From Macrostomum lignano (lineage: Eukaryota), in assembly GCA_002269645.1 (NCBI GenBank), contig NIVC01000364.1, positions 587,471 through 651,470 of the forward strand: a stretch of 64,000 bases of DNA, written 5' to 3'. How positions within the stretch are numbered: position 1 is the first letter of the stretch; each line of letters begins with the position of its first letter. Under the pieces are notes generated by a model. That model saw only the letters and a program-made list of their open reading frames with translations, made no database searches and had not been told where the DNA came from. Both the position numbers and the translations under genes were made by a program. Positions 2,793 to 60,782 of this stretch are shown here, piece after piece.

Positions 2793-2891
2793 GAGTTTTG
2801 AGCCTCACTGTATAGTTGCGCAAGACAGCCGGCCACCCAGCCACCCAAATGCTGATAATAAGGCAATTTATACCTGCCTCACTCTCCCCAG

Positions 2892-3306
2892 TGTTGACCA
2901 GCAGCCGGCAGTGCTGGAGATTCTGGACACGGCTGGCACGGAGCAGTTCGCCTCAATGCGCGATTTATACATAAAAAATGGCCAAGGCTTTGTTGTAGTC
3001 TTCAGCGTAACATCCATGCAGACGTTTCAAGATATACAGCAGTTGCGCGATCAGATTAACCGAGTCAAAGGCCAATCCAACAGTCCCATTGTGCTGGTTG
3101 GCAACAAGGCCGACCTGGCCGATTATCGTCAGGTAGCGCCGGACATGGGCGAGAGTCTCAGCCGAGCCTGGTCGTGTCCTTACCTGGAGGCCTCGGCCAA
3201 GACTGGCTACAACATTGAGGAGGTATTCCGCGTGGCCGTCGGCGAGATGAGCGCCGTAGCCAAGGCCAGGTCTGGTGGATCCGGATGCTGCTGCGCCATT
3301 CTCTGA
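2892..3306 (+). CDS. rap2: Rap2-like small GTPase, coding exon 2
   Basis: Acceptor ctctccccAG at 2890-2891. Contains LEILDTAGTEQFASMRDLYIKNGQGF (DTAGTE with the Rap-type Thr61), NKAD and EASAK motifs, and C-terminal CCCAIL CaaX box. Spliced product is about 181-182 aa. Confidence 0.93.
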
Positions 3307-10849: not shown

Positions 10850-12243
10850 TAGACACGGCCTATACGGCTGTACCTGTGCCTGTTTACAATTAGCTAGACA
10901 CGGCCTATACGGCTGTACCTGTGCCTGTTTACAATTAGCTAGACACGGCCTATACGGCTGTACCTGTGCCTGTTTACAATTAGCTAGACACGGCCTATAC
11001 GGCTGTACCTGTGCCTGTTTACAATTAGCTAGACACGGCCTATACGGCTGTACCTGTGCCTGTTTACAATTAGCTAGACACGGCCTATACGGCTGTACCT
11101 GTGCCTGTTTACAATTAGCTAGACACTGCCTATACGGCTGTACCTGTGCCTGTTTACAATTAGCTAGACACTGCCTATACGGCTGTACCTGTGCCTGTTT
11201 ACAATTAGCTAGACACGGCCTATACGGCTGTACCTGTGCCTGTTTACAATTAGCTAGACACTGCCTATACGGCTGTACCTGTGCCTGTTTACAATTAGCT
11301 AGACACTGCCTATACGGCTGTACCTGTGCCTGTTTACAATTAGCTAGACACGGCCTATACGGCTGTACCTGTGCCTGTTTACAATTAGCTAGACACGGCC
11401 TATACGGCTGTACCTGTGCCTGTTTACAATTAGCTAGACACGGCCTATACGGCTGTACCTGTGCCTGTTTACAATTAGCTAGACACTGCCTATACGGCTG
11501 TACCTGTGCCTGTTTACAATTAGCTAGACACTGCCTATACGGCTGTACCTGTGCCTGTTTACAATTAGCTAGACACTGCCTATACGGCTGTACCTGTGCC
11601 TGTTTACAATTAGCTAGACACGGCCTATACGGCTGTACCTGTGCCTGTTTACAATTAGCTAGACACGGCCTATACGGCTGTACCTGTGCCTGTTTACAAT
11701 TAGCTAGACACTGCCTATACGGCTGTACCTGTGCCTGTTTACAATTAGCTAGACACTGCCTATACGGCTGTACCTGTGCCTGTTTACAATTAGCTAGACA
11801 CTGCCTATACGGCTGTACCTGTGCCTGTTTACAATTAGCTAGACACGGCCTATACGGCTGTACCTGTGCCTGTTTACAATTAGCTAGACACGGCCTATAC
11901 GGCTGTACCTGTGCCTGTTTACAATTAGTTAGACACGGCCTATACGGCTGTACCTGTGCCTGTTTACAATTAGCTAGACACGGCCTATACGGCTGTACCT
12001 GTGCCTGTTTACAATTAGCTAGACACTGCCTATACGGCTGTACCTGTGCCTGTTTACAATTAGCTAGACACTGCCTATACGGCTGTACCTGTGCCTGTTT
12101 ACAATTAGCTAGACACTGCCTATACGGCTGTACCTGTGCCTGTTTACAATTAGCTAGACACGGCCTATACGGCTGTACCTGTGCCTGTTTACAATTAGCT
12201 AGACACGGCCTATACGGCTGTACCTGTGCCTGTTTACAGTTAC
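10850..12243. repeat. Homogeneous 45-bp tandem array CTAGACAC(G/T)GCCTATACGGCTGTACCTGTGCCTGTTTACAATTAG, 31 copies
   Basis: Exact 45-bp period with no spacers. Confidence 0.97.
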
Positions 12244-12998
12244 CTTATCAGGGTGCGTCTAAAAATTGCCTTTATTTAAACAACATTTTTCTTTCCAGCT
12301 CATATTTTTAGATTGATTAAAATAAGCAGAATATGGAAACAAAAATGCGCTAATACAAAAATTTTATTGTACAAAATTGTTTATTTACATTTGAAGTGAT
12401 AATTTTAGCGTGGGCTGTGCTATGAATGCCATGCCTATGAGTGAAAAAAAATGTCATACAGATGATTGAAAAAAACATACTAATATCTTTCTGCAAAAAA
12501 ATGGTGAAATAGAGCACTTTTGTAAATAAAAATTAGTTTAAATCAGCCAACGTACATGTATCGTATAAACTTGATACTTTAAAGCACAAAATAAATTTGA
12601 CGGAACCTACACACTGTGTGAAGTTCAAAAGAATCAATTTTAACTGTCACATAAATTAGTTTCACTTCAGCTCCTGTATCGAAAACGAAGTACCTCTTTA
12701 GTTTACTAATATAATAATATTTAAAGAAGTTTCCTCAATCCAGAGGAAAAAAGAAAACATGAGTCTTATTTTTTTCTAACTACGAGTACTGAGGGGAACC
12801 GTCTAAAAACTAATAAAATACAAGATATCATGTTCTTTTATTTTTACAGATACTAAGTGTATTTAGTCGCGACCGTTACCTTTTGCCCCAGTGAACTGCA
12901 GCTCATGCCGGATGTGCAACACTCTTCGCTTCCAGCAGCTGCACCCAAAATACTTCTTCTAGCTTCTTCTTCAATGCTCGGAAATTGAGCCCAGAGTG

Positions 12999-31369: not shown

Positions 31370-31718
31370 ATTGGCTGAGCTCTGAGCGATGGAGCCTCAC
31401 AGCCGCCCCTAACACCTTTCCTCACAGAAGGAACAGCGCCCACTGGTCCGCACCGCGACCCCCGCTCCTCCCCGCCTCTCGCCTCCTCTTGTGCCTACAC
31501 AAAATCCCCACTTAATCCTCTCCTCGCTTCTTCGACAGGAAGACAGGAAAACACAAATCATTTTTATCTGGCATTTCTCCTCGGCCAACTCTGCCGCAGT
31601 CCGTCAGTCCAGCCTTCAGCTCCCCATCAGTCTAATTCATTATCCTCCGATCCGCCTTACCTGAGCTGCTCGCATCCCCTGTTTATCAGCTCGGACTCCG
31701 CCTGCCGCACACGCCAAG
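31370..31718 (+). other. Candidate non-coding first exon of Otx copy A (5' end uncertain)
   Basis: Consensus donor AAG|GTAAGC at 31719. Acceptor ctttctacAG at 33083-33084 lies 3 nt before the Otx ATG. ATTGG box near 31370. Confidence 0.35.
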
Positions 31719-32910
31719 GTAAGCCTGCTAATCCTCAGGGCTCGCCGCAGTAGCTGTTTAGAAATTTTCCCCTTCACAATGCGAGGATAATCCGGCCTGC
31801 AAGCTGGATTATAATCCCCCCGCTGGCACCCACCCCCCCCCGAATCAGCTGAGCTGCAAATGAGGAAGCAGATTTCTTCCTCAGATATGCCCGTCCGTAC
31901 CTCTCTGCTGTGCTCAGAGACAATAAGGATAAATTATTATCGCTAGGCTTGGTTAGGTGAAGATTTCTCAATCCGACTAGAGACTGGTCTTAGCTGCTCA
32001 CAATTCATGAGCTGTTGTAGTTGTGTGCTCAATAAGGGTCTGAGGGGGGACACGGGGATTTGTGACCGATTAGGGGCCAGAAGATTAGCACTGCTTGAGC
32101 CCCAGCTCAAAGGCCTTCAGGATTGGGGTGGGTAGGTGAGGAGTAAGCCAAGGCCCTGCATGGGTTTTATATAAATATCCGAAGAAGCTGGGGATGCAGG
32201 GAGAGATGGAGCTATAGTTGCTCAGCATTCAGAACAGAGGCGAGTCTTGCTCCAAGTCTATGTTAAACGGCTGCGATAAAATGATAGCCAGATTCAACAG
32301 TCGGTGAGTCCTCGTGAGCACAGCTGCATTAAGACATTGCAATCTCTTTTACAAGCGTAGGTATCAGAGTTAGGAAATTTCAGAAACTTTCGAAATTTCT
32401 CGTCTCCCCAGAAAGTTTCCATGCCCAGCGCCTCTCGCCATGCAGGTTTTTCATCTTTAGCAACTCGACTGATACTCGATAGCCAGCAACTCCCAGAGGG
32501 AAGTCTCATTCCCCCCCAGCTCATGCCTCGGGTCTCGAGCTCGATGGGGAATTGTCGGCATATAACAGCAGCTAAAATGCATGGTGTATGGGCGAAAATG
32601 GCGATGGGCGAGGAGGCGGCGAGCTCTGGAACCGGGCAAGCAGGGGGAAACGACAAGGGCGAGGGCGAGGCAAAGGCGAGGCTTGGGGAGACAGACAAGG
32701 CACGCATTTTTCATCAACTTGTATCGGGAGACGGGGTGAATTATTTGGGTAGGAGAAAGGGGATTAAGAGGAGCCGGGAGGGGATTAGCAAGCATGCAGG
32801 ATTGGGATCTTCTTTAGCAGAGGAGAAGGGCGAAGCCATGCCATTTTCTTTCTTCGAAGCAGTTTGCTCAAATGAATCGGAAGTTGCTATACTGAGCATT
32901 AACAACGGCT

Positions 32911-33087: not shown

Positions 33088-33457
33088 ATGGACTGGAACA
33101 CAGCCTACCAGACTCAGACTCATCAGCAGCAGGCTCAGCTTCATCATCACCACCACCAGCACCATCATAGTTTGGTTGGCCAGACTCAGTTTAGCTACCC
33201 GATGCCCGACATGTCGAGCAGCGTCGGAGGCGGCATGTTCGGCTGCGGCAACGACAGCGACTTGACTGTCGGTCTCGGCGGCGGCTCAGCTATCGGCGGA
33301 TTTTCCACCGGAGCCACCTGCGGCTCTGGCGGCAGCGCCGGCGGCGGCGGTAGAGGCGACGGAATGCCTCTGCAGACAGCGGCGGCGGCGGCGGCGGCGG
33401 CGGCCCAAGCGCATCACGAGATGCTGCAGCACCATCCGGCACTGTCTGCCTATGCAA
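33088..33457 (+). CDS. otx: Otx/orthodenticle homeobox gene copy A, coding exon 1
   Basis: Starts ATG GAC TGG (MDW). Ends HHEMLQHHPALSAYA, matching exon 1 of copy B. Phase-1 donor GTGAGT at 33458; A|CC gives Thr in frame with exon 2. Spliced protein is 437 aa. Confidence 0.85.
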
Positions 33458-33526
33458 GTGAGTTTGAAACAAGGGAAATAGGAGCCTAATAATATAGATT
33501 CGAGAGTTTTGGCGGTTGGTGCGGCC

Positions 33527-34330
33527 AGTTGAAGGAGCGGAGGTAGAGGCTTGAGCAGCTCACTGAAGGAGCGGGGGTAGAGGCTTGAGCAGCTCACTGA
33601 AGGAGCGGGGGTAGAGGCTTGAGCAGCTCACTGAAGGAGCGGGGGTAGAGGCTTGAGCAGCTCACTGAAGGAGCGGGGGTAGAGGCTTGAGCAGCTCACT
33701 GAAGAAGCGGGGGTAGCGGATTGAGCAGCTCACTGAAGGAGCGGGGGTAGCGGATTGAGCAGCTCACTGAAGGAGCGGAGGTAGCAGATTGAGCAGCTCA
33801 CTGAAGAAGCGGGGGGTAGCGGATTGAGCAGCTCACTGAAGGAGCGGGGGTAGCGGATTGAGCAGCTCACTGAAGGAGCGGAGGTAGCGGATTGAGCAGC
33901 TCACTGAAGGAGCGGGGGTAGCGGATTGAGCAGCTCACTGAAGGAGCGGAGGTAGCAGATTGAGCAGCTCACTGAAGAAGCGGGGGGTAGCGGATTGAGC
34001 AGCTCACTGAAGGAGCGGGGGTAGCGGATTGAGCAGCTCACTGAAGGAGCGGGGGTAGAGGCTTGAGCAGCTCACTGAAGGAGCGGGGGGTAGCGGATTG
34101 AGCAGCTCACTGAAGGAGCGGGTGTGGCGGATTGAGCAGCTCACTGAAGAAGCGGGGGTAGCGGATTGAGCAGCTCACTGAAGGAGCGGGTGTGGCGGAT
34201 TGAGCAGCTCACTGAAGGAGCGGAGGTAGCGGATTGAGCAGCTCACTGAAGGAGCGGAGGTAGAGGATTGAGCAGCTCACTGAAGGAGCGGGGGTTTAAG
34301 CAGCTCACTGAAGAAGCGGAGGTAGAGGAT
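33527..34330. repeat. Minisatellite, about 34-bp unit TTGAGCAGCTCACTGAAGGAGCGGGGGTAGAGGC, in the Otx A intron
   Basis: Direct tandem repeat. Confidence 0.95.
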
Positions 34331-35166
34331 TCAGAGGCCTGTGAATTAGAAAACACTTCAAGAAGTCTCTAGTAAGTTTCCAGAACAGGTCAAGGTTGAG
34401 GCTGAATGTTGTCAACACACCTCGAAAGGAAAGCGATCACATCTTCTAACTGAAATAATTGCTTCGGGGCATTTATTTGCTGCTATTAACTTGATTACCT
34501 TACCGCCTCCGCCCTCAGCCATCTTTCTCGATACTCAGCTTGATTAAACCGAAAATCCAGTCCGTATCCCCTACTACCTGTAATCCCCCCACTCGATGCA
34601 ACTATTACTTTTTACTCACAGAAAATCCGCCTCGAGGCGGCTATAGGAGAAAATGAAAGATTTCGTCAACACAAAGAAATGCTCGCGGTCATTGAGCACA
34701 GGCGCTGGCTGCATCAGGCCGAATCCATCACTGACCACCTGAGTGCCGCGTTCAATGGAATGCTCAGATTCATGAGCATACTTGACTGCTCTATAGGGGG
34801 GGGGGGGAGGCCAATCCGACCTTTCAGAGCGCCCGACACGCGACCCCCCCCCAGCCTCTCGCGTGGATGCGAAAGAATTTTATTTGGCTACAAAGGGGCG
34901 CGCCTGTCTGTATAGAGAATAATCCCAGCGGATTGAAGGTCTGCTTTGAATGCTGCAGATTAAAACAAAACGGCGCGGCCCCCCACCCGCCGGGCTCGCC
35001 GAGCCGAGAGAATTCGAGAGGGGGCGGCTGCGGCTCCCCGCTGCTTGTTGGCCCACCTGGGGCAGCTGCTCAGACACGAAAGGCAGTGCGTGTAACACAA
35101 CTGAACTCAACCCATTAGCGCCATTTTCTCAAGCCCGAACGCAACCCCATCGGATTAACTTTGCAG

Positions 35167-36110
35167 CCCCTGTGCGCAAGCAGCGGCGCGAGAGGACCAC
35201 CTTCACCAGGGCGCAGCTGCAGATCCTGGAGGAGCTGTTCGGCAAGACCAAGTACCCGGACATCTTCATGCGCGAGGAGGTGGCGCTGCGGATCAACCTG
35301 CCGGAGTCGCGGGTGCAGGTCTGGTTCAAGAACCGCCGGGCCAAGCAGCGCCAGCAGCAGAAGCAGAAGGAGGCCGGCGAGAAGGCCGCCCACTGCGGCG
35401 TGTCGGCCGCCTCCGCCGGACAGCCGGTCGGACACGCCGGACACGCTGGACACGCCGGACATGCCGGACACGCCGGACACGCCGGACACGGAGCGAAGGC
35501 CGTCTCCGTCTCGGCTTCCGCCGCGCCGCTGGCCGGAGGCTCCGCACTCGCCGCCGCCACCGCTGCCGCTGCGGCCGCTGCCGCCAACATCGGCGGCGGA
35601 GGCGGCGGCGCCGGCATCGACATGACCGGCTGCCTCCACGACGCCGGCGGTGGCGCTGTCAAGTGCGAGGACGTCGACTCGAGCAGCCCGTCGCCCGCCA
35701 AGACGCTCAGCCTGCCCGGCTCGGCCGAGGCCTCCAAGCGCAGCCCCGCCGTCTCCGCCAACGGCCACGCCGCCGCCGCGGCTGCCGCTGCCGCGCACTT
35801 CCTCACCGACTCTACCGGACACTCCGGCGCCGCCGGCTGGGGCGCCTCGGCCGCCGGACGCCTCGCCGGACCCAACAGCCCGACTGACGGCGGCTCCGCC
35901 TACGCCACCTGCGTTCAGCAGCAGCACCGCAGCGCTGCCGCAGCCGCAGCCGCCGCGGCCGCTGCCGCTGCCTACCACAACCAGACCTACGGACAGTACA
36001 GCGCTACAGGCTACCCTCCGTATGACTACCTGCGACCTGCTGCCTACCCGCAGCAGCCGCCAGACTATGACTATCAGGGCTGGTCATCGCGCAAGCTGCA
36101 GCTGCTGTAG
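35167..36110 (+). CDS. otx: Otx homeobox gene copy A, coding exon 2 (homeodomain and C-terminus)
   Basis: Acceptor tttgcAG at 35165-35166. Encodes [57 protein letters not shown], a PRD-class K50 Otx-type homeodomain. C-terminus WSSRKLQLL resembles the Otx tail WKFQVL. Stop TAG. Confidence 0.95.
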
Positions 36111-36529
36111 CTCACTGACTTTAGCAGGAATATTCCATATATAGTCCGGCCTAAACAGTCTCTGTGTATTAATTAATAAGCTTATCTGGATTTGTATGCT
36201 GCATGCCTCCGCCACCGTTTTCTTACCGATCATTGAAATTCTGGCCCCAATGCAGAAGAAAAATGCTTGGCTGTTACATGTAAGCCTCTTCAGTCTCCCT
36301 ATATATTTGTTTTTGTAATTTCCTTCTCTGAATTTTGCATAGTATTGCAACTTTTCTCACTAAAATGTAGCGTATAAAAATTGAAGAATAGCTTACCGCC
36401 TGTGTTCGTGCTCTGATCCTTAGTCTGCCGCAAATATATTTGCTCGTCTGTTAACAATATTTAATGTGCTTTTTGTCGCTTCGTTTCAGTTTGCTGCGTT
36501 GCTTGGATTGATTGGCATACTGGCTGTTG

Positions 36530-37440
36530 GAGGTTGTTTGAGGCTGTTTGAGAGCTGTTTGAGGTTGTTTGGGGCTGTTTGAGAGCTTTTTGAGGTTGTT
36601 TGGGGCTGTTTGAGAGCTGTTTGTGGTTGTTTGAGGCTGTTTGAGAGCTGTTTGAGGTTGTTTGGGGCTGTTTGAGAGCTGTTTGAGGTTGTTTGGGGCT
36701 GTTTGAGAGCTGTTTGTGGCTGTTTGAGAGCTGTTTGAGGTTGTTTGGGGCTGTTTAAGAGCTGTTTGAGGTTGTTTGGGGCTGTTTGAGAGCTGTTTGA
36801 GGTTGTTTGGGGCTGTTTGAGAGCTGTTTGAGGTTGTTTGGGGCTGTTTGAGAGCTGTTTGAGGTTGTTTGGGGCTGTTTGAGAGCTGTTTGAGGTTGTT
36901 TGGGGCTGTTTGAGAGCTGTTTGAGGTTTTTGAGAGCTGTTTGAGGTTGTTTGGGGTTGTTTGGGGCTGTTTTAGAGCGTTTGAGGTTGTTTGGGGCTGT
37001 TTGAGAGCTGTTTGAGGTTGTTTGGGGCTGTTTGAGAGCTGTTTGAGGTTTTTGAGAGCTGTTTGAGGTTGTTTGGGGTTGTTTGGGGCTGTTTTAGAGC
37101 TGTTTGAGGTTGTTTGGGGCTGTTTGAGAGCTGTTTGGGGTTGTTTGGGGCTGTTTTAGAGCTGTTTGAGGTTGTTTGGGGGGGGCTGTTTACAGGGGTT
37201 GTTTGGGGGGTTGTTGGAGGTCTGTTTGTGGGTTTGTTTGAGAGTCTTTTGGAGGCTGTTTGGGGGCCTGTTTGGGGCCTGTTTGGGGGCCGTTTGGGGG
37301 TCTTTCTGGGGGCTGTTTGGGGGCTGTTTGGGGGCTGTTGGGGGGCTGTTTGTGGGCTGTTTTAGGGCTGTTTGGGGTTCTGTTTAGGGGCTGTTTGTGG
37401 GCTGTTTGAGGGCTGTTTGGGGGCTGTTTGGGGCGCTGTT
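36530..37440. repeat. Minisatellite, about 31-bp unit GAGGTTGTTTGGGGCTGTTTGAGAGCTGTTT, degenerating to GGGGCTGTTT; in the spacer between the Otx genes
   Basis: Direct tandem repeat. Confidence 0.93.
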
Positions 37441-38108
37441 CTAAGACTAGAATTTTTCTGACGCTATACTTTTAACAAAAAAACGAACTACAACTGAAAT
37501 GCATCCGTCTTATATAGTTATTCTTAAACATACAGTATTAGTTTTCATTGCTCAATATATATTTCAAATAGATATATATGTATATATACTTGCATTTCGC
37601 ACTTATAAAAATCAGTTTTATTGTTAACCAGTTGCCTAGATTCTGTCTTTATGCAGAATGATTTAAATTTAGAGACGCCACAAAGCGGTGCATAGCTACA
37701 GGCCTTTACTAAACATTGACAGTTCTGGACAATCTGCAGAGACAGATGCTTAAAAACATGTTTAAATTTCTAATTTTAACAAACAGAGAGACCAGAGTGA
37801 CAGGTGTGAGTAAAGTAAGTAATATCGCAGAAATTCGTGCCAGAAGCTATAATAATTACTGTCTACAAGGAGAGCATTTAAACAAAATTTAAACAATAAT
37901 AACTACACTTATTTAGAACGCATTCCTATGGCTGTACATATTGCTCATCGCTAGGGGACTCGTACGCATAAGGAAAATATATAGAAAAGCTTAATAGTGA
38001 AATCCCGGATGAAAACCCGACACAAAAACGGTTTGCACTTTGACGCAAAGTCCCAACAATGACCGAACAATAAATCATTAATCCGATATCAATCATGTGT
38101 CAAAGAGT

Positions 38109-39052
38109 TCACAGCAGCTGCAGCTTGCGCGATGACCAGCCCTGATAGTCATAGTCTGGCGGCTGCTGCGGGTAGGCAGCAGGTCGCAGGTAGTCATACG
38201 GAGGGTAGCCTGTAGCGCTGTACTGTCCGTAGGTCTGGTTGTGGTAGGCAGCGGCAGCGGCCGCGGCGGCTGCGGCTGCGGCAGCGCTGCGGTGCTGCTG
38301 CTGAACGCAGGTGGCGTAGGCGGAGCCGCCGTCAGTCGGGCTGTTGGGTCCGGCGAGGCGTCCGGCGGCCGAGGCGCCCCAGCCGGCGGCGCCGGAGTGT
38401 CCGGTAGAGTCGGTGAGGAAGTGCGCGGCAGCGGCAGCCGCGGCGGCGGCGTGGCCGTTGGCGGAGACGGCGGGGCTGCGCTTGGAGGCCTCGGCCGAGC
38501 CGGGCAGGCTGAGCGTCTTGGCGGGCGACGGGCTGCTCGAGTCGACGTCCTCGCACTTGACAGCGCCACCGCCGGCGTCGTGGAGGCAGCCGGTCATGTC
38601 GATGCCGGCGCCGCCGCCTCCGCCGCCGATGTTGGCGGCAGCGGCCGCAGCGGCAGCGGTGGCGGCGGCGAGTGCGGAGCCTCCGGCCAGCGGCGCGGCG
38701 GAAGCCGAGACGGAGACGGCCTTCGCTCCGTGTCCGGCGTGTCCGGCGTGTCCGGCATGTCCGGCGTGTCCAGCGTGTCCGGCGTGTCCGACCGGCTGTC
38801 CGGCGGAGGCGGCCGACACGCCGCAGTGGGCGGCCTTCTCGCCGGCCTCCTTCTGCTTCTGCTGCTGGCGCTGCTTGGCCCGGCGGTTCTTGAACCAGAC
38901 CTGCACCCGCGACTCCGGCAGGTTGATCCGCAGCGCCACCTCCTCGCGCATGAAGATGTCCGGGTACTTGGTCTTGCCGAACAGCTCCTCCAGGATCTGC
39001 AGCTGCGCCCTGGTAAAGGTGGTCCTCTCGCGCCGCTGCTTGCGCACAGGGG
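38109..39052 (-). CDS. otx: Otx homeobox gene copy B, coding exon 2
   Basis: Acceptor atttgcAG at 39054-39053. Same translation as copy A exon 2. Stop TGA. Confidence 0.95.
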
Positions 39053-39126
39053 CTGCAAATTGGAAAATGAAAACTTAGAGAAACTCGAGTTCGTCCTATG
39101 AATAGTGTGACAGAGTTCAGTCTTAC

Positions 39127-39301
39127 TGGAGTAGGCGGTCAGGGCCGGATGATGGAGCATCTCGTGATGAGCCGGCGGTGTGGCGATCCCGACGCCCAGG
39201 TTGCCCATCATGGCGAAGCCCTGCTTGCCCAGTCCGCTGGCGCCTCCCGGATGCGGGTTATAATTGAACTGCGAGCCGTGGTGATAGCCGCTCCAGTCCA
39301 T
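39127..39301 (-). CDS. otx: Otx homeobox gene copy B, coding exon 1
   Basis: Encodes MDWSGYHHG...HHEMLHHPALTAYS. Phase-1 donor GTAAGA at 39126; 74-bp intron; in frame with exon 2. Spliced protein is 372 aa. Confidence 0.87.
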
Positions 39302-40674
39302 CGCTCTACAGCTGGAATGAAATCACCAAACCTATAGTTGGTATTCAGTTCCCGATTTGAAGAACGATGAAGAACACCGGCAGCTGCAGTTCTTGTGTCG
39401 ATAAAATACTAAATAGAGAGCCAGAGAGGCCTGAGGCACGAGGAAACTTGAGCTCAGGACGATGGGTCCCACTGACACCGGGGCGAGTGGGGCGAGCGTG
39501 CGCCGAGTTAATGGGTCGGCCTCGGATTTCGGATAGACAGGTAGAGAGACGCAGACAGCGTATATGGGAGTTTTAGGGCGAGTGGCGTTGGGTGAAACTG
39601 TCGCTTGAACCCCACTCCCCCGTCACCTTCATCAGCACGGGCTGGGGGATCTCTAATCCCCAGCTGGAAAGAGGAGAGGCTGAGACTAAAAGCAGGCGGC
39701 CTGTCTGCAGGTGCACCACGCGGGGCCGCTGAACGGAGTTGCCGCATCGTAAGTCGAGTCGTCGCCATCGCGATGGATTTAGTAGGGGATTAGGGATATT
39801 CGGGTGGGGGCGGCGGGTCAGCGAGAGTTGGGGAACTTTCGGGACGGCCGATGGCTGTCAGAGGAGATGCTGAGGGGGGGGAAGTTTTAGCGAAATGGGA
39901 AGCCGAGTTTCGGAGCCCCATCGGAGCCACCCCCCCCCCTGTTGCCCCACCTGAGCTCGAGTTTGTCTTCTATTCATATTTTCCCTGCAATTGTCAGGGG
40001 AGAGACAAGCGGAGGATGGGCTCAAGCCATTTTTTTCATCAGCTGCCTCTCTCGCCCTGCTTTTGCCCCGTGTCTCCCGCCTCTTTCCCGGGGGCCCTGC
40101 CATTCGAATGGAAGGGATTAGCGAGAGGATTAAAGGACTGAAAACATGTCACTCTGATGGCCCGGGAGGGGTCGGGTGGGGTGGGTCGAGAGAGAGAAAT
40201 AGAGGAAGGGAGCAGCGCCTGCAGCCCCCCAGGGTGCAGAGACTGGAGACAAAAACTCGCTGGCGTAAGCAGCGACAGCTCGGCGCAGCTTCATCCCCAA
40301 TGGCCTGCCCTCTCCCGTATAGCCGCACAGGGTCTAAATAGGTTTTTCTTTGGCGCACGCAATTTCGGGATAAAAATGAACGGCGGTTTGCTAAAAATTT
40401 GTTAAAATCCGTTTTAAAACGGAATGACGGAAAACAGAAGCTATGGAGATGAAGGCGGGACCCGGAGTCGAAGGGGGCGGAAATAGGGCGGATTTGTCGT
40501 AAAACTGGGCGGTAAGGGGCGGATTTATTAATAAATAAGGAGGAAAACTTTATAATTAGAAATTTTACGAAACAAATGAGGCAAAAAATCTGTGGGAAGC
40601 AACAAAAATAGTAACCCAATTTGGTTGAGCAAAATGACCAGACAATGGGAGAATGCTGTTAAATCAATACTCAC

Positions 40675-41000
40675 CTGAATCGTTTGACACTTGAGATTTT
40701 AATAATAGAAAAGGCGGCCTTCGAAGCCTCAAAGCTGGAGATCTTCTTCTAGAAGGAGCCGGGCAAGGATGGGAGTCCCGCTGGAGGGGATTAAGAAGGG
40801 ATTTGGCGAGCGGGTTGGCGACTGCGGGACGAAGCGAATCGGGCAGCTGTGTTTGGACTGGACACGATGGGGCAGGGAGGCTGGAATAAGGCGCTAGCAG
40901 AAGCAGGCGGAAGATAAGCTCAAGAAATCTGCAGCGCCGGGTTGGAGCTTGGCGCAGAAACTGTTTCTGTCGCGGAGGCCGGCCAATCCGGCGAGTCCAA
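40675..41000 (-). other. Candidate non-coding first exon of Otx copy B (5' end uncertain)
   Basis: Consensus donor CAG|GTGAGT at 40674 on the - strand. Acceptor tttcattccAG at 39313-39312 lies 10 nt before the ATG. Confidence 0.35.
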
Positions 41001-44919: not shown

Positions 44920-45330
44920 TGGCGCCGAATAGGAGGATTAGCGCCGAATAGTGGGATTAGCGCCAAATAGTGGGATTAGCGCCAAATGGGAGGATTAGCG
45001 CCGAATAGGAGGATTAGCGCCAAATGAGAATTTTAGCGCCAAATAGGAGGATTAGCGCCAAATAGTGGGATTAGCGCCAAATTAGAGGATTAGCGCCAAA
45101 TAGTGGGATTAGCGCCAAATTAGAGGATTAGCGCCAAATAGGGGGATTAGCGCCAAATAGGGGGATTAGCGCCAAATGGGAGGATTAGCGCCAAATAGGA
45201 GGATTAGCGCCGAATAGGAGGATTATCACCAAATAGGAGGATTAGCGCCAAATGAGAATTTTAGCGCCAAATAGGAGGATTAGCGCCAAATGAGAGGATT
45301 AGCGCCAAATGAGAGGATTAGCGCCGAATA
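44920..45330. repeat. Minisatellite, 19-bp unit GGATTAGCGCCAAATAG(GA/TG), carrying 19 GGATTA (K50 homeodomain) sites
   Basis: GGATTA counted 19 times between 44935 and 45320. Confidence 0.92.
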
Positions 45331-45738: not shown

Positions 45739-46147
45739 CGTAGATTTGTTGCTGGACGTGCCGAAATGAGTAACAGAAAATGAAATTCTGACCAATTTTA
45801 ATAGTATATAGATATAATAGAAAGAGTTTTAGCAGGCCAATACCTACCTGACTAGTCCGCTATCATGGGGCGCATTGTGCCGGTCTGTAACTACAGACAC
45901 AATGCCTCATTTGCATAATCAGGCTCTGTTTGCCTAAATGGGCCATTGTCAGAAAATTTACATTCCGTTTATTTACTGCCAGCATATTGACCCAAGCGAT
46001 GAGAGTGCGATGTTCATTGCTGCAGTCTGGATGGCTTTTTATAGTCTTTTTCCAGACGCATTCTTTTTTTTGAGAAAATCAAGAGTTCACAGAAAAGACT
46101 TGGGTGCTGAGCTGTTCAAGTGAAGCTGAGTAAAACCGTGTTTTAAT

Positions 46148-49100
46148 TCTAGTCTGAGCATCTGGGAGAATTCTAGTCTGAGGATCTGGGAGAATTCTAG
46201 TCCGAGGATCTGGGAGAATTCTAGTTTGAGGATCTGGGAGAATTCTAGTCTGAGCATCTGGGAGAACTCTAGTCTGAGCATCTGGGAGAATTCTAGTCTG
46301 AGGATCTGGGAGAATTCTAGTTTGAGGATCTGGGAGAATTCTAGTCTGAGCATCTGGGAGAACTCTAGTCTGAGCATCTGGGAGAATTCTAGTCTGAGGA
46401 TCTGGGAGAACTCTAGTCTGAGGATCTGGGAGAATTCTAGTCTGAGGATCTGGGAGAATTCTAGTCTGAGGATCTGGGAGAATTCTAGTTTGAGGATCTG
46501 GGAGAATTCTAGTCTGAGCATCTGGGAGAACTCTAGTCTGAGCATCTGGGAGAATTCTAGTCTGAGGATCTGGGAGAATTCTAGTTTGAGCATCTGGTAG
46601 AATTCTAGTCTGAGCATCTGGGTGAACTCTAGATTGAGCATCTGGGAGAATTCTAGTCTGAGGATCTGGGAGAATTCTAGTCTGAGGATCTGGGAGAACT
46701 CTAGTCTGAGGATCTGGGAGAATTCTAGTCTGAGGATCTGGGAGAATTCTAGTTTGAGGATCTGGGAGAACTCTAGTCTGAGGATCTGGGAGAATTCTAG
46801 TCTGAGCATCTGGGTGAACTCTAGATTGAGCATCTGGGAGAATTCTAGTCTGAGGATCTGGGAGAATTCTAGTCTGAGGATCTGGGAGAATTCTAGTCTG
46901 AGGATCTGGGAGAATTCTAGTCTGAGGATCTGGGAGAATTCTAGTCTGAGGATCTGGGAGAATTCTAGTCTGAGGATCTGGGAGAACTCTAGTCTGAGGA
47001 TCTGGGAGAATTCTAGTCTGAGCATCTGGGTGAACTCTAGATTGAGCATCTGGGAGAATTCTAGTCTGAGGATCTGGGAGAATTCTAGTCTGAGGATCTG
47101 GGAGAATTCTAGTCTGAGGATCTGGGAGAATTCTAGTCTGAGGATCTGGGAGAATTCTAGTCTGAGGATCTGGGAGAATTCTAGTCTGAGGATCTGGGAG
47201 AATTCTAGTCTGAGGATCTGGGAGAATTCTAGTCTGAGGATCTGGGAGAATTCTAGTCTGAGGATCTGGGAGAATTCTAGTCTGAGGATCTGGGAGAATT
47301 CTAGTTTGAGGATCTGGGAGAATTCTAGTCTGAGCATCTGGGAGAACTCTAGTCTGAGGATCTGGGAGAATTCTAGTCTGAGGATCTGGGAGAATTCTAG
47401 TCTGAGGATCTGGGAGAATTCTAGTCTGAGGATCTGGGAGAATTCTAGTCTGAGGATCTGGGAGAATTCTAGTCTGAGGATCTGGGAGAATTCTAGTCTG
47501 AGGATCTGGGAGAATTCTAGTCTGAGGATCTGGGAGAATTCTAGTCTGAGGATCTGGGAGAATTCTAGTCTGAGGATCTGGGAGAATTCTAGTTTGAGGA
47601 TCTGGAAGAATTCTAGTCTGAGCATCTGGGAGAACTCTAGATTGAGCATCTGGGAGAATTCTAGTTTGAGGATCTGGGAGAATTCTATTCCGAGGATCTG
47701 GGAGAACTCTAGTCTGAGGATCTGGAAGAATTCTAGTCTGAGCATCTGGGAGAACTCTAGATTGAGCATCTGGGAGAATTCTAGTCTGAGGATCTGGGAG
47801 AATTCTAGTCTGAGGATCTGGGAGAACTCTAGTCTGAGGATCTGGGAGAACTCTAGTCTGAGCATCTGGGAGAACTCTAGTCTGAGGATCTGGGAGAATT
47901 CTAGTTTGAGGATCTGGTAGAATTCTAGTCTGAGCATCTGGGAGAACTCTAGTCTGAGGATCTGGGAGAATTCTAGTCTGAGCATCTGGGAGAATTCTAG
48001 TCTGAGCATCTGGGAGAATTCTAGTCTGAGGATCTGGGAGAATTCTAGTCTGAGGATCTGGGAGAATTCTAGTCTGAGGATCTGGGAGAATTCTAATCTG
48101 AGGATCTGGGAGAACTCTAGTCTAAGGATCTGGGAGAATTCTAGTTTGAGGATCTGGTAGAATTCTAGTTTGAGGATCTGGGAGAATTCTAGTTTGAGGA
48201 TCTGGGAGAATTCTAGTTTGAGGATCTGGGAGAATTCTAGTTTGAGGATCTGGGAGAATTCTAGTTTGAGGATCTGGGAGAATTCTAGTCTGAGGATCTG
48301 GGAGAATTCTAGTTTGAGGATCTGGGAGAATTCTAGTCTGAGCATCTGGGAGAACTCTAGTTTGAGCATCTGGGAGAATTCTAGTCTGAGGATCTGGGAG
48401 AATTCTAGTTTGAGGATCTGGGAGAATTCTAGTCTGAGGATCTGGGAGAATTCTAGTTTGAGGATCTGGGAGAATTCTAGTTTGAGGATCTGGGAGAATT
48501 CTAGTCTGAGCATCTGGGAGAACTCTAGTTTGAGCATCTGGGAGAATTCTAGTCTGAGGATCTGGGAGAATTCTAGTTTGAGGATCTGGAAGAATTCTAG
48601 TCTGAGCATCTGGGAGAACTCTAGTTTGAGCATCTGGGAGAATTCTAGTCTGAGGATCTGGGAGAATTCTAGTTTGAGGATCTGGAAGAATTCTAGTCTG
48701 AGGATCTGGGAGAATTCTAGTCTGAGCATCTGGGAGAATTCTGGTCTGAGGATCTGGAAGAATTCTAGTCTGAGCATCTGGGAGAACTCTAGTTTGAGCA
48801 TCTGGGAGAATTCTAGTCTGAGGATCTGGGAGAATTCTAGTTTGAGGATCTGGAAGAATTCTAGTCTGAGCATCTGGGAGAACTCTAGTTTGAGCATCTG
48901 GGAGAATTCTAGTCTGAGGATCTGGGAGAATTCTAGTTTGAGGATCTGGAAGAATTCTAGTCTGAGCATCTGGGAGAACTCTAGTTTGAGCATCTGGGAG
49001 AATTCTAGTCTGAGGATCTGGGAGAATTCTAGTCTGAGGATCTGGGAGAATTCTAGTCTGAGGATCTGGGAGAATTCTAGTTTGAGGATCTGGAAGAATT

Positions 49101-50092
49101 CTAGTCTGAGCATATGGGAGAACTCTAGTTTGAGCATCTGGGAGAATTCTAGTCTGAGGATCTGGGAGAATTCTAGTCTGAGGATCTGGGAGAATTCTAG
49201 TTTGAGCATCTGGGAGAATTCTAGTCTGAGGATCTGGGAGAATTCTAGTCTGAGGATCTGGGAGAATTCTAGTCTGAGGATCTGGGAGAACTCTAGTCTG
49301 AGGATCTGGGAGAACTCTAGTCTGAGCATCTGGGAGAACTCTAGTCTGAGCATCTGGGAGAATTCTAGTCTGAGCATCTGGGAGAATTCTAGTCTGAGGA
49401 TCTGGGAGAATTCTAGTCTGAGGATCTGGGAGAATTCTAGTCTGAGGATCTGGGAGAATTCTAGTCTGAGGATCTGGGAGAATTCTAGTCTGAGCATCTG
49501 GGAGAATTCTAGTCTGAGGATCTGGGAGAATTCTAGTCTGAGGATCTGGGAGAATTCTAGTCTGAGGATCTGGGAGAACTCTAGTCTGAGGATCTGGGAG
49601 AATTCTAGTCTGAGGATCTGGGAGAATTCTAGTTTGAGGATCTGGAAGAATTCTAGTCTGAGCATCTGGGAGAACTCTAGTCTGAGGATCTGGGAGAATT
49701 CTAGTCTGAGGATCTGGGAGAATTCTAGTCTGAGGATCTGGGAGAATTCTAGTCTGAGGATCTGGGAGAATTCTAGTCTGAGCATCTGGGAGAATTCTAG
49801 TCTGAGGATCTGGGAGAATTCTAGTCTGAGGATCTGGGAGAATTCTAGTCTGAGGATCTGGGAGAACTCTAGTCTGAGGATCTGGGAGAATTCTAGTCTG
49901 AGGATCTGGGAGAATTCTAGTTTGAGGATCTAGAATTCTAGAGCATCTGGGAGAATTCTAGTTGAGCATCTGGGAGAATTCTAGTTGAGGATCTGGTAGA
50001 ATTCTAGTCTGAGCATCTGGGTGAACTCTAGATTGAGCATCTGGGAGAATTCTAGTCTGAGGATCTGGGAGAATTCTAGTCTGAGGATCTGG
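46148..50092. repeat. Large 24-bp satellite array CTAGTCTGAGGATCTGGGAGAATT, about 160 copies
   Basis: Exact 24-bp period; it produces the 1232-aa ILRLEFSQ ORF. Confidence 0.97.
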
Positions 50093-53600: not shown

Positions 53601-54705
53601 GACCAGTGCTACTGTGCTAGTGATGACAAAGTCAAATATTTTTGGTGATATAAATAAATAAAAGCACAAGACAACAACCGTTATTTTGCTAGTATCTGAT
53701 TACACTGATTTGCAAGACAATTAAATATCTTAAAGAATAAGCTTAATCTGGTCTTTAAGTTGTTATTTAGACACTGGGGCTGACGAGACAGGGGTACTCG
53801 AAGAACAGTCTTCAATAACAACATTTATAAATGGCAAGTCCTATTAAATAAATAGACAAGCAAATTATTGCAGCTTCACATATAAGAAAGGTTGATTTTA
53901 TCCAGACCCCGTCATCAATATTTCTAGCGCCCCCAGCATTGGGACAACACCAACAAATGTAACAAAACTAAAAACACGGTCACGACACGTCTGTAGTTAA
54001 TTTATTAAGAAAATACGCGCAAACTTTTTTATAATCATCAAAATTTACATTCATATTAGACTACTCAAAACAAAACAGTTAGTAGCGAGGGAGGGACCTG
54101 CCAATTGGAAATATATACGCTCGGAAAAAACTCTGCGCTTATCAACTTTTTAAGCACACTTTGTTGCGAAAATTGTAGCATAGATTAATAAATAATAGAA
54201 GAAAAAAATTAATAAGGACAAGCGAACAGACACCAATTAAAATTTTATTGTCAAAAAAGCGATTATGCAATTTTTGAATGCATTAATCCAATCCAATACA
54301 TTTCTGACGAGGAACAAAACGAATAAAAGGGCTAATCAACAAATAAAACTTAGAACAGTTATATCATAGCTTGCATGCGAAATACAACTGGATAGAGCTG
54401 TGAAGATCGAATCGAATACCGAACAGGCAGTTCTGATGTAGCATTTAAATTTGCCAGAATTTTAACACGGTCAAATTTTGCTATAATTTGTCTGAACAAT
54501 CATATCAATGAATATTAATGAATTTTTGTAAATTACTAACTGGAATCAGTGCATACTGTTTTGCGTAATTAATGAGCAAGCAATTATTAAGGTGTTATAA
54601 AATTATCCACTGCCGAGAAAATACCAAGTAGCGTATTACGAGGAACTATTCAATTTTCCTTTACCTTGAATAGTTTAGCAATTCATTGTATCCACTTTAT
54701 AGTTT

Positions 54706-54982
54706 AATATAATTGACTACACCTGCTCTAACGGCCAGATGTGCAACCGACAGCTCAGCCGCATGCTGCGTACGGCTGTTCAGTCCAAGGACTGGGGGGG
54801 GGGTCACCACACACCCTCAATTACCCCAGCTAATGCTGGCACCCATTTTACAGCTGGGTGAACTGAAGCAATGCAGAGTTAAGTGTCTTTGCTCAAGGAC
54901 ACAAATCGTTCCGATTAGGATTGGGAGTCGAACCCCGACCTTCAAGTCGTGAGTCGTGGGAGTAACCACTAGGCTAAAACCC
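54706..54982 (-). mobile_element. tRNA-derived SINE with CORE-like central domain (apparently full length)
   Basis: A-box TAGCCTAGTGG (54976-54966) and B-box GGTTCGACTCC (54934-54924). These are followed by TGTGTCCTTGAGCAAAGACACTTAACTC...CTGTAAAATGGG, which resembles the MIR/CORE consensus from memory, and a 3' tail shared with the adjacent copy. Confidence 0.75.
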
Positions 54983-55028: not shown

Positions 55029-55195
55029 GGGACTGTAGCCTAGTCCCCCCTGCCCCAGTCCTTGGACTGAACAGCCGTACGCAGCCTTCAGATGCGCCGC
55101 GCAATAGCTGCGGCTGAGCTGTCGGTTGCACATCTGCCACTTGGGCAGGTGTAATCAATTATTGTTATTATTAATATTATTATTACTACTATTAT
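55029..55195 (+). mobile_element. Internally deleted copy of the same SINE (5' head fused to 3' tail, ATT-rich end)
   Basis: GGGACTGTAGCCTAGT head joined directly to CCCCAGTCCTTGGACTGAACAGCCGTACGCAGC...CAGGTGTAATCAATTA, the reverse complement of 54710-54800. Confidence 0.65.
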
Positions 55196-55657: not shown

Positions 55658-56189
55658 CTGTGGGAATTGCCGCAAACGGTTAATATTACTAATACTATTA
55701 AAATTATTATTATTATACATTATTAGCTAAAGTTACTGAATTATTGTGGACATGGCGGGCCGCTGACAGAGCAAGTAAAAGGGCAAAGAAAGTTCAAATG
55801 AGCTTTGAAAATTTCATTGTTGAAAAAAGCAGTTGCAATGGCAGACACCCAAGCCGTGGAATGGGGCATTCGAAGTTAAAACCCAAATTTGAAGTCTCAA
55901 GGCCACAGAGAACTTCATTTATAGTATATACCATAGAAATGGATCTTATACTTAAGTATTGCGATTAAATATATTTTTTCGTCTATGTCCATAGACTACT
56001 GACGATTAGTTTTCAGTAGTGCAAGCGAACATTTTTTGTCCCCGAGTCATTATTGGGTGTCATTTTCTATGCATTGTCTGAATGGGGAGTGGCCTATCTA
56101 GTGTATATAAGATCTATAATCTATCCTACAATAAAGTGCTAAAAATTAGTATAGAGGAAACCAAATAAAAAATATTAAGCAACACTTAC

Positions 56190-57539
56190 TTGTAGCAAAT
56201 AAGCAGACTGATTATTGACATAGCCTGGTGGCTGAAATCCATAGTGCTGCTGCTGCTGCTGCTGTTGCTGAGAAGACGGTGTCGGCACGCCGCCAAATTG
56301 CGGCGGACCAAACTGCCCACCTGTTGAGTAGAGAGCGCCAGCAGTTTGACTGTACAGAGCCGAGAACTGCTGCTGCTGCTGCTGTTGAGGTTGATGTTGC
56401 TGCTGCAGAAATGGATATTGTTGCTGCTGCGAAAATGAATATTGCTGTTGCTGCTCCGGCATAGGCTGGTAGCCAGTTGAATTGGCTACAGAAGCTAGTT
56501 GAGGAGTACTCATCGAGTATTGCATCCCGCCAAAGTGTTGCTGCTGCTGATTGTGAGCTAGAAATCCGCCGCCTCCACTAGAAGCAGCAGCAGCAGCAGC
56601 GGTATTCTGCTGACCATACAAAGCCATGATAGAATCTTTCATAGATTTCTTTGGAGCAGCGGCGGTGTTCGCAGAATTAGAAGAATCGCTGGCAAACAGG
56701 TCGGCAGCAGTGGCGGTCGTGGCGCTGCCCTCGCTTAAGAATGCCAAATCGTTGGCGTGCGAGCTGGCGACTCCGCCACCGCCACCGCCGCCGCCGCCGC
56801 TAGAGAAGTCGCCAAATCCGTCATCGGCCAGACCGCCAAGCAGATCTGGCGGCGGCTGCTGCGGCACTGCTGAAGGAGGTGCCGGCTGCTGTGGCTGCTG
56901 CGGGGGCGGTTGCTCAGGCTTTGATTGAGACGCAGCCTGCGGCGGAGGCTTCACTGCCGCGGTGGTGTTGCCAGCAGAGCGCCTGGCTGGCGCGGGCGCG
57001 GGCGCCGGCAGCTTCGGCGACACGCCGTCAGCGGCGGCAGAGTTAGCAGCGGCGGCAGCTCGTCGCTGAGCAGTGTTGGTCTTGAGCAGATCGTACACAG
57101 CAGCTGGATCGGGTTTAGGCAGCACCCAGTCCCTGGCTAAGTAGCGCTTCTCCTCATACTTAGCCTTGATGAACTGCTCAAGCGTGGCGTCCGTCTGCGG
57201 CCGACGGAATCCATCCGGCACGTTGGCCTCGTAGGCGGCTCTGGCTAGCGAGTTACCAATAGCGGCCACCCCAGCCACCTGTTCGGCTGTCCAGGAGTCC
57301 AAGTTGACAGATTTCACTCGCGAGATGTGCACGCCCAGCTTCCTGTGGATGCCGGCGCATCTGATGCAGAGGAATACGCCAATGTTCCAGCTGGCCCAGC
57401 GGGGACTTTTAGCATCGCAGTCAGCGCAGTACTTATTGTCCTCGTCTCTTAGCAGCATGCCCAGCACGTCCTGGAGTAGGTCCTTCTCGCTCTTTGCAGC
57501 TGCCAGCTTGCCAGAGCGGTGTCCAGTGCTGGATGACAT
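56190..57539 (-). CDS. smap: Stromal membrane-associated protein (SMAP1/2-like ArfGAP), exon 1
   Basis: ArfGAP zinc finger CADC-x16-[32 protein letters not shown] and [14 protein letters not shown]. Later [13 protein letters not shown] motif typical of SMAP. Donor CAA|GTAAGT at 56189. Spliced protein is 494 aa. Confidence 0.93.
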
Positions 57540-58194: not shown

Positions 58195-60221
58195 TTATCA
58201 AGCAATATAAACTTAAAGTCGCTTTTATTAGAAACACAGGTTATAAACAACGTGGATTATGTAAAAAGTGAATTAAAAAATTTGTAGGCCCCCTACTCAA
58301 AGTTTTTAAGTATATTAGATCAAGATAAATTGAGCAAACAAGTGTTAGCAAAGTAAACAAAGTAAACAAAACAGAGTGCAAAAAGTATATGTGCACTTCT
58401 TTTCTAAAAGACTCAGAGTAAATGGCCTACACCACCATGCACCAGCTAAGTATTTTATATTCAAATCAATATAGGCCTATTCAATTCAAATATAAATTAT
58501 AAGCCCCCTACCAATGACAAAGTTATCAAATCAAACTAAATATAGTAACTAACAATAGTATTAGGCCTAATGTATAATGTTGTATGTTGTATTTATTAAT
58601 TTTTAAATATAACTAGGGCATGAGATATTTAGACAATCTATTTGTCTTGTCTTAGTCTGGGTTTTATGCCTACTAATTTGCTTTGTTAATGCTCATTGTG
58701 CTGGCACAGTGATAGTAACAAAAGAAATAATTTTGTATTAATTAACAACTCTTCAAAAGAGCACAAATAAAGGCTCTCCTGATCCTAGAGCAAGCAAAAG
58801 TCAACTAAAAATGTAAGAATAACTTAATAAGATATGTCGTCATAACTGACTAAAGTCCCTAGGCCGCCTAGCTCTAGGGCCTCGGCTTAAATAGTGATGA
58901 CACTAAATCTGCAAAACAAAAATCATTAGATTTTTTATTTTTTTCACGTTTGAGTCACCAGTCACACAATCATTATTAATATTGGTAAATGAGAAATGTG
59001 ATATATTTTTGTGATGATTTCGTGATACTCTCATTTCTATAGATTTCAAGGACTACTTAAGTCATCCTTGATAAATAAATTTCTTTCGGGCTGCTTTACA
59101 CTTTTTTAAACAAAACATGTTAAACGAATTGCAAAATTAGACTTAAAAGTAAATTCAGCTATTCCTTACGCTTATTTATCACTTTTAAATTTAAAAAGCT
59201 TCACTACCTTTGATAAAACATTGTTTACAGAAAGTATCAATGTTGCTTTTAATTTATTATTGATTTTATAATAATTCCAGTGACTATTCAATATTCGAGA
59301 TTTTGTTGTGATCTGTTTGATCAAAAACACATAGTACATGCATGAGTGTTAAGACAGCGAAAGGTGCTTTTTTGTAGTAAATCAGCTGCAATAATAGCAA
59401 TGAAGCTTACGTTAGCTAAATCTTGTTTGCATGGATTCCTGCCTCCTGCGCAGCGCACTATACGGCACTAGCATTATATATTTCAATGTTATAAATAATT
59501 TTCACCAAACAATTAGTTAATTATTTTTGAGCTTTAGAATAAATCATGTATCTTATTTCAAATTCTTATCTTAATGGATATTAGAGGTAGGTAGAAAGCT
59601 TAGAATTTTAGCAAAATTTTCTTTTTAGTCACACAGTTATGTAGTCAAGTTAAGCAGTGTGCTTATGTGCCTTTAGTTTGTTAATTTGTCAGTAGCTAGA
59701 TGCACGTTTTAAGGACCGTTTCTTTCTATACAGTCACAGAAATAGAAAAATGAGTATTAAATGAATAAATCGCTTTACTTTTTGATTTATCATATTGGCC
59801 TACCTATCATAAACCACTTGCTTTATGAATTTTAAATGATGCCTTTCTGGTATATCTAAATTGTTAAATGTTCTAAACACATAAAATATACTTCTCCACG
59901 AAATTAATTTTGAACCTAATTTTAACTTCAATATCATGGCCCAGTTGTTCCATTTTTTCTCTAGACTTTCTCTACTTTTCTACAACTTATAAACAAAGTT
60001 TACTTAAGAGTAAAAATAAGTTGTGCTTGTTTAATAACTCTTGATAAATATTTCCCTATTTTCTATATCTTTTTGAAGTCGAAGACCTACTTTATCAATA
60101 ATTGTTTTCAATAATAAATAAACATTCTAGTTTTTTACTGTAAGTAATCCAAACATTTTTTCTTTCCAGTCGCCATAGTTTCAAGGCTTCAACAACCAAA
60201 ATTATCATTCAAGGCTTGGCA

Positions 60222-60584
60222 ATGTCTGGTGAAAACAAAGACAATGGTGACCCCTACTACTGCTCGGAGCAGATTCAGATCCCGCCCCCATTGCCAGACA
60301 TCCTGAAGCAATTCACCAAATCTGCAATCCGCACCCAGCCGCCAGATGTGCTGGCTTGGGCAGCCGCTTACTTCCGTGCCATGGCCGACGGTGAAACTCC
60401 GCCAGTGAAGGAGCGCCTTGAGATGGCAACCGCAACGCAGAAGACGGACACCGGTCTCACTCCCGGTCTGCTCCGAGTGCTCAACAAGCAGCTGGGCCCA
60501 AAGAAGCAAGTTGAAGTAAGCGACATCACAGAAAAATGGAAGGCGCTAAATCTGCCGGAAGAGCGTCTGCAGGAACTGTTCCAG
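60222..60584 (+). CDS. ropn1l: Ropporin-1-like protein (RIIa-type docking domain), coding exon 1
   Basis: QIQIPPPLPDILKQFTKSAIRTQPPDVLAWAAAYF and PVKERLEMATATQKTDTGLT match the ROPN1/ROPN1L family. Phase-0 donor CAG|GTGAAT at 60585. Confidence 0.92.
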
Positions 60585-60782
60585 GTGAATACTGAATGCC
60601 ATTCAGGGTGCAATCAGCGTATTTTTGTGATATTCGTTTTAGATAGCGAATCCTTTATTAAAATACAGTATGCATACATTGTACCACCAGGAATGTGCTC
60701 TTAGCGGCTCGATAGTTCTAGCACAGTCCGCTCCGTTCAGCGGGTCAAAAATATTTTTATGACAGGCTGTTTTTTAGAGGAA

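Follow-up and report, generated by a model that had tools for sequence, protein, structure and literature searches.

We analysed a 64,000-nucleotide (nt) stretch of the Macrostomum lignano genome (assembly GCA_002269645.1, contig NIVC01000364.1, positions 587,471 to 651,470), hereafter the window, and found in it two Otx homeobox genes, which we call OtxL and OtxR. Both are two-exon genes that lie tail to tail about 2 kb apart, and the coding part of exon 2 of each makes up one arm of an inverted repeat (Table 1; positions are counted from the first letter of the window). The spliced coding sequence (CDS) of OtxL is free of stop codons and encodes 437 amino acids (aa); that of OtxR encodes 372 aa. 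The introns are both of the GT..AG type, in phase 1, and are found at the same position just before the homeodomain. OtxL exon 1 was located by tblastn with the OtxR exon 1 peptide, using its HHEML block, and then by reading of the sequence. The two reading frames are intact and begin with MDW, as does the transcript-based model of a third Otx paralogue described below, and we infer that both genes are functional.

No protein model for OtxL or OtxR is present in the collections searched, and an exact look-up of the exon 2 open reading frames (ORFs), of the ArfGAP ORF and of ten other ORFs of the window found none on record. On the same contig, an ArfGAP gene (P0384, 494 aa) and an adjacent gene of 236 aa carry annotation. 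Past the OtxL stop, the plus strand has a single canonical AATAAA, at 38069, which is about 40 nt short of the OtxR stop; past the OtxR stop, the first one of the minus strand is at 37622. Use of these signals would make the OtxL and OtxR transcripts overlap in antisense, although the poly(A) signals of this species may be non-canonical.

The assignment to the Otx family is based on the homeodomain. Both proteins contain a paired-like homeodomain (Pfam E-value about 1e-20) with lysine at position 50 (K50). Among the best 120 matches, nearly all of those with a name are OTX1, OTX2, otx5, Crx or ocelliless, with 80-92% identity in the homeodomain, and an exhaustive search of representative sequences agrees with Otx/otd/Crx as the closest relatives. 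The C-terminal ending of OtxL and OtxR is similar, though not identical, to the WKFQVL/WPKFQVL ending of the proteins P0024, P0038 and P0143, and is the same as that of the third paralogue. The Pfam domain TF_Otx (PF03529) has no match at E <= 0.1 in OtxL or OtxR. It is also missing from most invertebrate Otx matches and is therefore not family-defining outside vertebrates.

Table 1. Positions of the convergent Otx pair, its inverted repeat and other features of the window
Feature	Position	Strand	Description
OtxL exon 1	33088-33457	+	370 nt, ATG to GT donor, phase 1; encodes MDWNTAY...HHEMLQHHPALSAYA
OtxL intron	33458-35166	+	1709 nt, GTGAGT...TTTGCAG; 34-nt minisatellite at 33530-34331
Left arm	35160-36108	+	last 7 intron nt, all exon 2 coding sequence, first stop base
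OtxL exon 2 coding part	35167-36110	+	stop TAG 36108-36110; Pfam homeodomain 35184-35354; GHA and poly-Ala repeats; Otx-like C-terminal tail
Single arm difference	35204	+	C (TTC) versus T at 39015 on the minus strand (TTT)
Near-identical homeobox patch	35214-35308 (mirror 38911-39005)	+	95 nt, 1 nt different from the third paralogue (L001 about 11635-11729)
Spacer between the two stop codons	36111-38108		1998 nt; ends unrelated; 31-nt G/T-rich minisatellite 36522-37440
Right arm	38111-39059	-	949 nt
OtxR exon 2 coding part	38109-39052	-	stop TGA 38111-38109; Pfam homeodomain 38865-39035
OtxR intron	39053-39126	-	74 nt, GTAAGA...TTTGCAG, phase 1
OtxR exon 1	39127-39301	-	175 nt; encodes MDWSGYHHGSQFNY...HHEMLHHPALTAYS
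GGATTA/TAATCC motifs (K50 homeodomain-type)	31513-32782		seven, upstream of OtxL (motif count)
GGATTA/TAATCC motifs	39654-40788		five, upstream of OtxR (motif count)
GGATTA/TAATCC motifs	44922-45330		about 15, in a 19-nt minisatellite upstream of OtxR (motif count)
Rap2-like small GTPase exon	2791-3306
tRNA-Leu(GAG), ARAGORN prediction, probably a false positive	49887-49983		97 nt; inside the 24-nt minisatellite 46145-50092
SMAP-type ArfGAP ORF	56175-57539		98% identical to M. lignano P0264
ORF	60216-60704		inside the annotated 236-aa gene
Other two subgenome copies of the region			contigs NIVC01002991.1 and NIVC01001013.1

The inverted repeat consists of two arms of 949 nt that a repeat finder places 2002 nt apart. 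When compared base by base, the arms agree at 948 of the 949 positions. The sole mismatch is synonymous (TTC in OtxL, TTT in OtxR, both coding for Phe) and lies 45 nt inside the arm, counted from its 5′ edge; the codon of the third paralogue is TTC. On the 5′ side, identity starts with TTTGCAG, the last 7 nt of the intron, and the bases before are unrelated. On the 3′ side, it ends with the T of the stop codon, which is TAG in OtxL and TGA in OtxR. Identity drops immediately beyond these limits, with only chance-level matches in the 80 bases outward on each side. Within the arms, even the (GHA)7 repeat with its 9-nt unit and internal variants and all of the poly-Ala tracts are the same. Thereby, direct comparison confirms what a preliminary description of this DNA had reported from the letters: a single synonymous difference between the 949-bp arms, identity running from 7 nt inside the intron to the stop codon, and slippage-prone poly-Ala and GHA repeats that are the same in both arms. 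Of the seven intron bases within the identical stretch, the last four (GCAG) recur at the acceptor of the third paralogue (TTTTCCGCAG) and the remaining three are Ts of the pyrimidine tract, so that the true 5′ limit can be placed only between -7 and 0.

Outside the arms, the two genes are diverged. The first exons, of 370 and 175 nt, keep a weak likeness (local alignment z = 7.7 against shuffled sequences) and can be aligned solely at the start ATGGACTGG, at QF(S/N)Y and in the HHEML(Q)HHPAL.AY block. No homology above shuffles was found between the introns (1709 versus 74 nt, z = 0.2), in the 400 nt downstream of each stop (z = 0.07) or in the 600 nt upstream of each ATG (z = 1.95). The divergence of exon 1, introns and 3′UTRs had already been noted in the preliminary description, and its statement that promoters and N-termini evolve freely is, as far as the divergence of the letters goes, a fair one. 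For the HHEML..HPAL block, it had listed both synonymous changes and large indels. The synonymous changes are there, in 5 of the 12 codons that specify the same amino acid; the large indels are not, the alignment having a single Gln codon as the sole indel of the block and the large ones elsewhere in exon 1.

The third M. lignano Otx gene (P0002 = Mlig008535g2, contig NIVC01001954.1, locus L001) provides a yardstick for these differences. It is unlinked to the pair, has a two-exon structure like that of OtxL and OtxR, and has no partner within 10 kb on either side. In a protein search for the pair itself or near relatives, the spliced OtxR query gave P0002 alone, and the exhaustive representative search adds P0139 alone, which is another model of the third paralogue with an intact tail and is not on record in an exact look-up. 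The region after the homeodomain, used as a protein query, returned no relatives, the query being swamped by low complexity. We considered P0002 as an orthologue from another species and rejected this, the window itself being from M. lignano. Synteny between L001 and the window is unconvincing, only a short element being common to both. This element forms an inverted pair in the window (54699-54912 / 55053-55183) that is 80-91% identical to L001 3092-3335, which lies 7 kb upstream of the third paralogue. It has no match in Rfam and is probably a dispersed repeat.

In exon 2, the third paralogue is far from the arms. Its homeodomain protein sequence is identical to that of OtxL and OtxR, and the homeobox itself is 86% identical to that of the arms, with differences in 20 of the 65 codons for the same amino acid. 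The last 200 nt of exon 2 are about 74% identical. Between homeobox and tail, the third paralogue is Gln-rich whereas the arms are Ala/Gly-rich, and about 200 residues (some 600 nt) are unalignable. At the rate seen with the third paralogue, around a hundred synonymous differences would be expected between the second exons of OtxL and OtxR, and one is observed. Exon 2 of the third paralogue also contains a frameshift before the conserved tail (L001 about 12290-12500), with the consequence that P0002 ends in a nonsense tail; this is either an indel error left over after polishing or a sign of a decaying subgenome copy.

Exon 1 gives a different age. The first exon of the third paralogue encodes MDWSAAY..TQFNYSP..AFPLMGGLTGVGLG..HHEILNHPAFS, and OtxR exon 1 aligns with it at least as well as with OtxL exon 1. 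The histories of exon 1 and exon 2 are thus incompatible, which is the signature of conversion; this discordance is read from the distances between three paralogues rather than from a rooted tree with an outgroup. The distances support a split of OtxL and OtxR about as old as the split from the third gene, as judged by exon 1, and a recent homogenisation of exon 2. The earlier proposal of an old duplication agrees with this comparison, in which the exon 1 of the third gene is as near to OtxR as OtxL is while its exon 2 is far from both arms.

The timing can be set against the recent polyploidy of the species. The M. lignano line that was sequenced has three subgenomes with a single-nucleotide polymorphism (SNP) divergence of 1.4-2.4% (PMC10733133). 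In the ArfGAP CDS (1365 nt), 17 kb from the Otx pair, the other two subgenome copies differ from the window by 6 and 12 substitutions (0.44% and 0.88%), whereas the arms differ by 0.1%. Under a Poisson model, 949 nt would show one difference or none with a probability of 0.08 and 0.002 at the two ArfGAP rates, and of less than 1e-4 at the published genome-wide subgenome rates. The arm difference being lower than the subgenome divergence, the last homogenisation is placed at or after the polyploidisation.

We consider it quite probable that recurrent gene conversion between the inverted arms keeps exon 2 of the old OtxL/OtxR pair identical. The preliminary description had come to a similar interpretation, and the discordance between exon 1 and exon 2 among the three paralogues supports it; that conversion is ongoing, as it had put it, is suggested by arms that are only 0.1% different. 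According to this model, a break in one arm would be repaired in cis from the other arm in a non-reciprocal manner. A rare crossover between the inverted arms would only flip the 2-kb spacer without deletion of a gene, and the inverted arrangement would therefore be stable. The introns and the 3′ flanks would have lost all similarity long ago, so that heteroduplex would stop at the exon boundaries: conversion needs homology on both sides of the break, the flanks have none, and the tracts would hence be confined to the exon. Purifying selection on the coding sequence may keep exon 2 alike enough for conversion to continue, while exon 1 and the upstream regions would have escaped conversion and diverged. 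The locus would then yield one DNA-binding and C-terminal module with two upstream regions and two N-termini.

Several points weigh against this reading. Mlig_3_7, the assembly that contains the window, was made from PacBio continuous long reads (CLR) with Canu v1.4 and polished by Pilon, using Illumina reads mapped with Bowtie2 and RNA sequencing (RNA-seq) reads mapped with STAR (PMC5730564). In this neopolyploid genome, 93% of read pairs multi-map, and scaffolds that are chimeric account for 36% of the assembled length (PMC10733133). Correction by Canu or Pilon might have overwritten arm-specific variants of exons that are similar but not identical, and six near-identical exon copies, as predicted across the three subgenomes, are a genuine polishing risk. 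Polishing by RNA-seq acts on exons only and cross-mapping ends where similarity ends, which could mimic an identity limited to the exon. The one surviving variant is of the kind best protected from cross-mapping, near the edge of the arm; conversion is also expected to be least efficient there, and the position of the mismatch does not discriminate between the two. The frameshift left in the similar sequence of L001 indicates that polishing was imperfect, and Pilon could have erased some true differences between the arms. Besides polishing, the other two copies of the region (L002 and L003), which are collinear with the window at 96-98% identity, with non-coding DNA 1-4% apart, can be compared only up to the window equivalents of 41460 and 41407, so that they stop about 2.1 kb before OtxR, with no called gene between these ends and the Otx pair. 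OtxL and OtxR, for which the collections searched have no protein model, appear to be unannotated genes with putative expression. The high G+C content at third codon positions (GC3) of exon 2 (0.85), which we considered as a sign of GC-biased conversion, was rejected as non-specific, the homeobox of the unpaired third paralogue having the same GC3. Nonetheless, we regard an artefact as an improbable, if serious, explanation. The same polishing left the ArfGAP subgenome copies 0.44% and 0.88% apart and non-coding DNA 1-4% apart, and a read with a variant aligns best with the copy it came from. For cross-mapping to occur, the arms must already share more than about 95% identity, also in the fast-evolving low-complexity region, and given the divergence of exon 1 this in turn requires conversion. 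The lack of a gene model for either Otx gene suggests that there was little RNA-seq coverage to polish with, and PacBio reads of several kb span the 3.9-kb structure, so that each arm was assembled together with the unique sequence around it. Polishing could inflate the identity of the arms but cannot create the contrast with exon 1. What the preliminary description had named as the main alternative is accordingly a real concern for a Pilon-polished assembly, but one weakened by the distinct ArfGAP subgenome copies. A palindrome produced by fold-back or chimeric reads was rejected, since each arm has its own unique surroundings, the flanks are unrelated and a 2-kb spacer separates the arms.

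The same identity could also result from a single recent event with no continuing process, such as one long conversion, a double crossover or an inverted duplication of exon 2 only. A snapshot of one locus cannot tell one event from many, and 99.9% identity dates only the last of them. However, undisturbed divergence would have left exon 2 unalignable over about 600 nt, with little homology to start or resolve a tract of 944 nt. A single late conversion after full divergence is thus mechanistically unlikely, its interior being without homology, which favours recurrence since the duplication. A duplication with breakpoints within a few bases of both the splice acceptor and the stop codon would require two coincidences at once, whereas recurrent conversion limited by homology predicts both. 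We hold a single event to be rather less plausible still than an assembly artefact. To extreme purifying selection on the nucleotides of exon 2, acting on copies that do not exchange sequence, we attach next to no credence. The homeodomain protein sequence is indeed identical in all three paralogues, but synonymous sites and slippage-prone repeats are the same in the arms and differ freely in the third paralogue, and the region after the homeodomain is unalignable between the two; such selection is already contradicted by these comparisons. Recurrent conversion between the arms, with repair from one arm to the other, would account for both the exon-wide identity and its limits.

Sequence exchange may extend beyond the pair. 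One 95-nt patch of the homeobox is nearly identical between the arms and the unlinked third paralogue (Table 1), while outside the patch the homeobox differs every 3-4 nt. For its run of 31 codons, of which <=1 differs, a codon-usage null and a permutation null both give p <= 5e-5. The patch is explained either by an older ectopic conversion between unlinked paralogues or by constraint at the nucleotide level, and suggests that the Otx gene family may exchange sequence more widely. More speculatively, the pair could be seen as two front ends with one shared module, in which exon 2 evolves as a unit with occasional exchange with the homeobox of the unlinked third paralogue while upstream regions and N-termini diverge. 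We put this forward as a tentative picture that has the odds against it.

Regulation of the pair may involve its own products. GGATTA/TAATCC is the core site of K50 (Otx/Bicoid-type) homeodomains, and clusters of this motif are found upstream of both genes (Table 1) compared to only 13 sites in the other 49 kb of the window. These candidate sites could mediate auto- or cross-regulation of the Otx pair.

Minisatellites with periods of 10-52 nt occupy 28.7 kb, or about 45%, of the window; the longest array is 3.9 kb (46145-50092). Array lengths vary between the subgenome copies, and arrays are found in the OtxL intron and in the spacer. The predicted transfer RNA (tRNA) of Table 1 lies in the longest array, and an Rfam scan of the window gave no match.

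These results add two unannotated Otx genes to a flatworm model of regeneration and stem cells, together with an unusually clean case of concerted evolution limited to one exon of a developmental transcription factor gene, with tract limits that match the surviving homology. They also carry a warning for flatworm Otx trees and paralogue counts, as the homeobox exon and the first exon tell different histories. The polyploidy being recent and all three subgenomes assembled, public data alone could show when and how often conversion took place. If our reading is true, six arms across young subgenomes would provide a direct and datable measure of conversion rate and tract limits.

Conversion in duplicated genes has been described in a number of systems. 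In Drosophila Hsp70, the whole intronless coding region is homogenised, and conversion between engrailed and invected is patchy and old; to our knowledge, neither is a case of two-exon genes in which only one of the exons is locked. The palindromes of primate Y chromosomes range from tens of kb to Mb, and their arms hold whole genes with flanks and are >99.9% identical by intrachromosomal conversion. As in these palindromes, the Otx arms are inverted around a unique spacer, which an arm-to-arm crossover would invert. Unlike them, the Otx arm is a single exon, is bounded by the loss of homology and is found on a chromosome not known as non-recombining. Our literature search gave no paper that deals with conversion or with Otx paralogues in Macrostomum.

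In the mammalian ETCHbox genes, which are paired (PRD)-class genes derived from CRX/Otx, gene conversion among duplicates is reported (PMC8208926). These genes form tandem arrays of fast-evolving derived genes, whereas the Otx pair described here is convergent and canonical. The hexapod engrailed/invected genes and the inverted Hsp70 pair of Drosophila are linked paralogues with concerted evolution that is mosaic or covers the whole coding region; both are cited as conversion cases, along with Y-chromosome palindromes, in a study of Dlx genes (PMC3199776). A close parallel is the subject of that study, Dlxa and Dlxb of Capitella teleta, closely linked homeobox paralogues in tail-to-tail orientation with a homeobox region of near-identical nucleotide sequence, which its authors ascribe to proximity-based gene conversion (McDougall et al. 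2011, PMC3199776). Like the Otx genes, they form an inverted pair that is mostly diverged, with identity that runs a few bases into the intron (PMC3199776). Conversion between inverted homeobox paralogues is thus already known. The Capitella tract is short, covers part of the homeobox, is split by an intron and is 98.4% identical, while the Otx tract covers the entire exon 2 over 949 nt with 99.9% identity, takes in the long C-terminal region of low complexity and stops at both limits of the coding part. What sets the Otx pair apart is how long and complete its tract is, and how cleanly a locked exon is separated from a free one.

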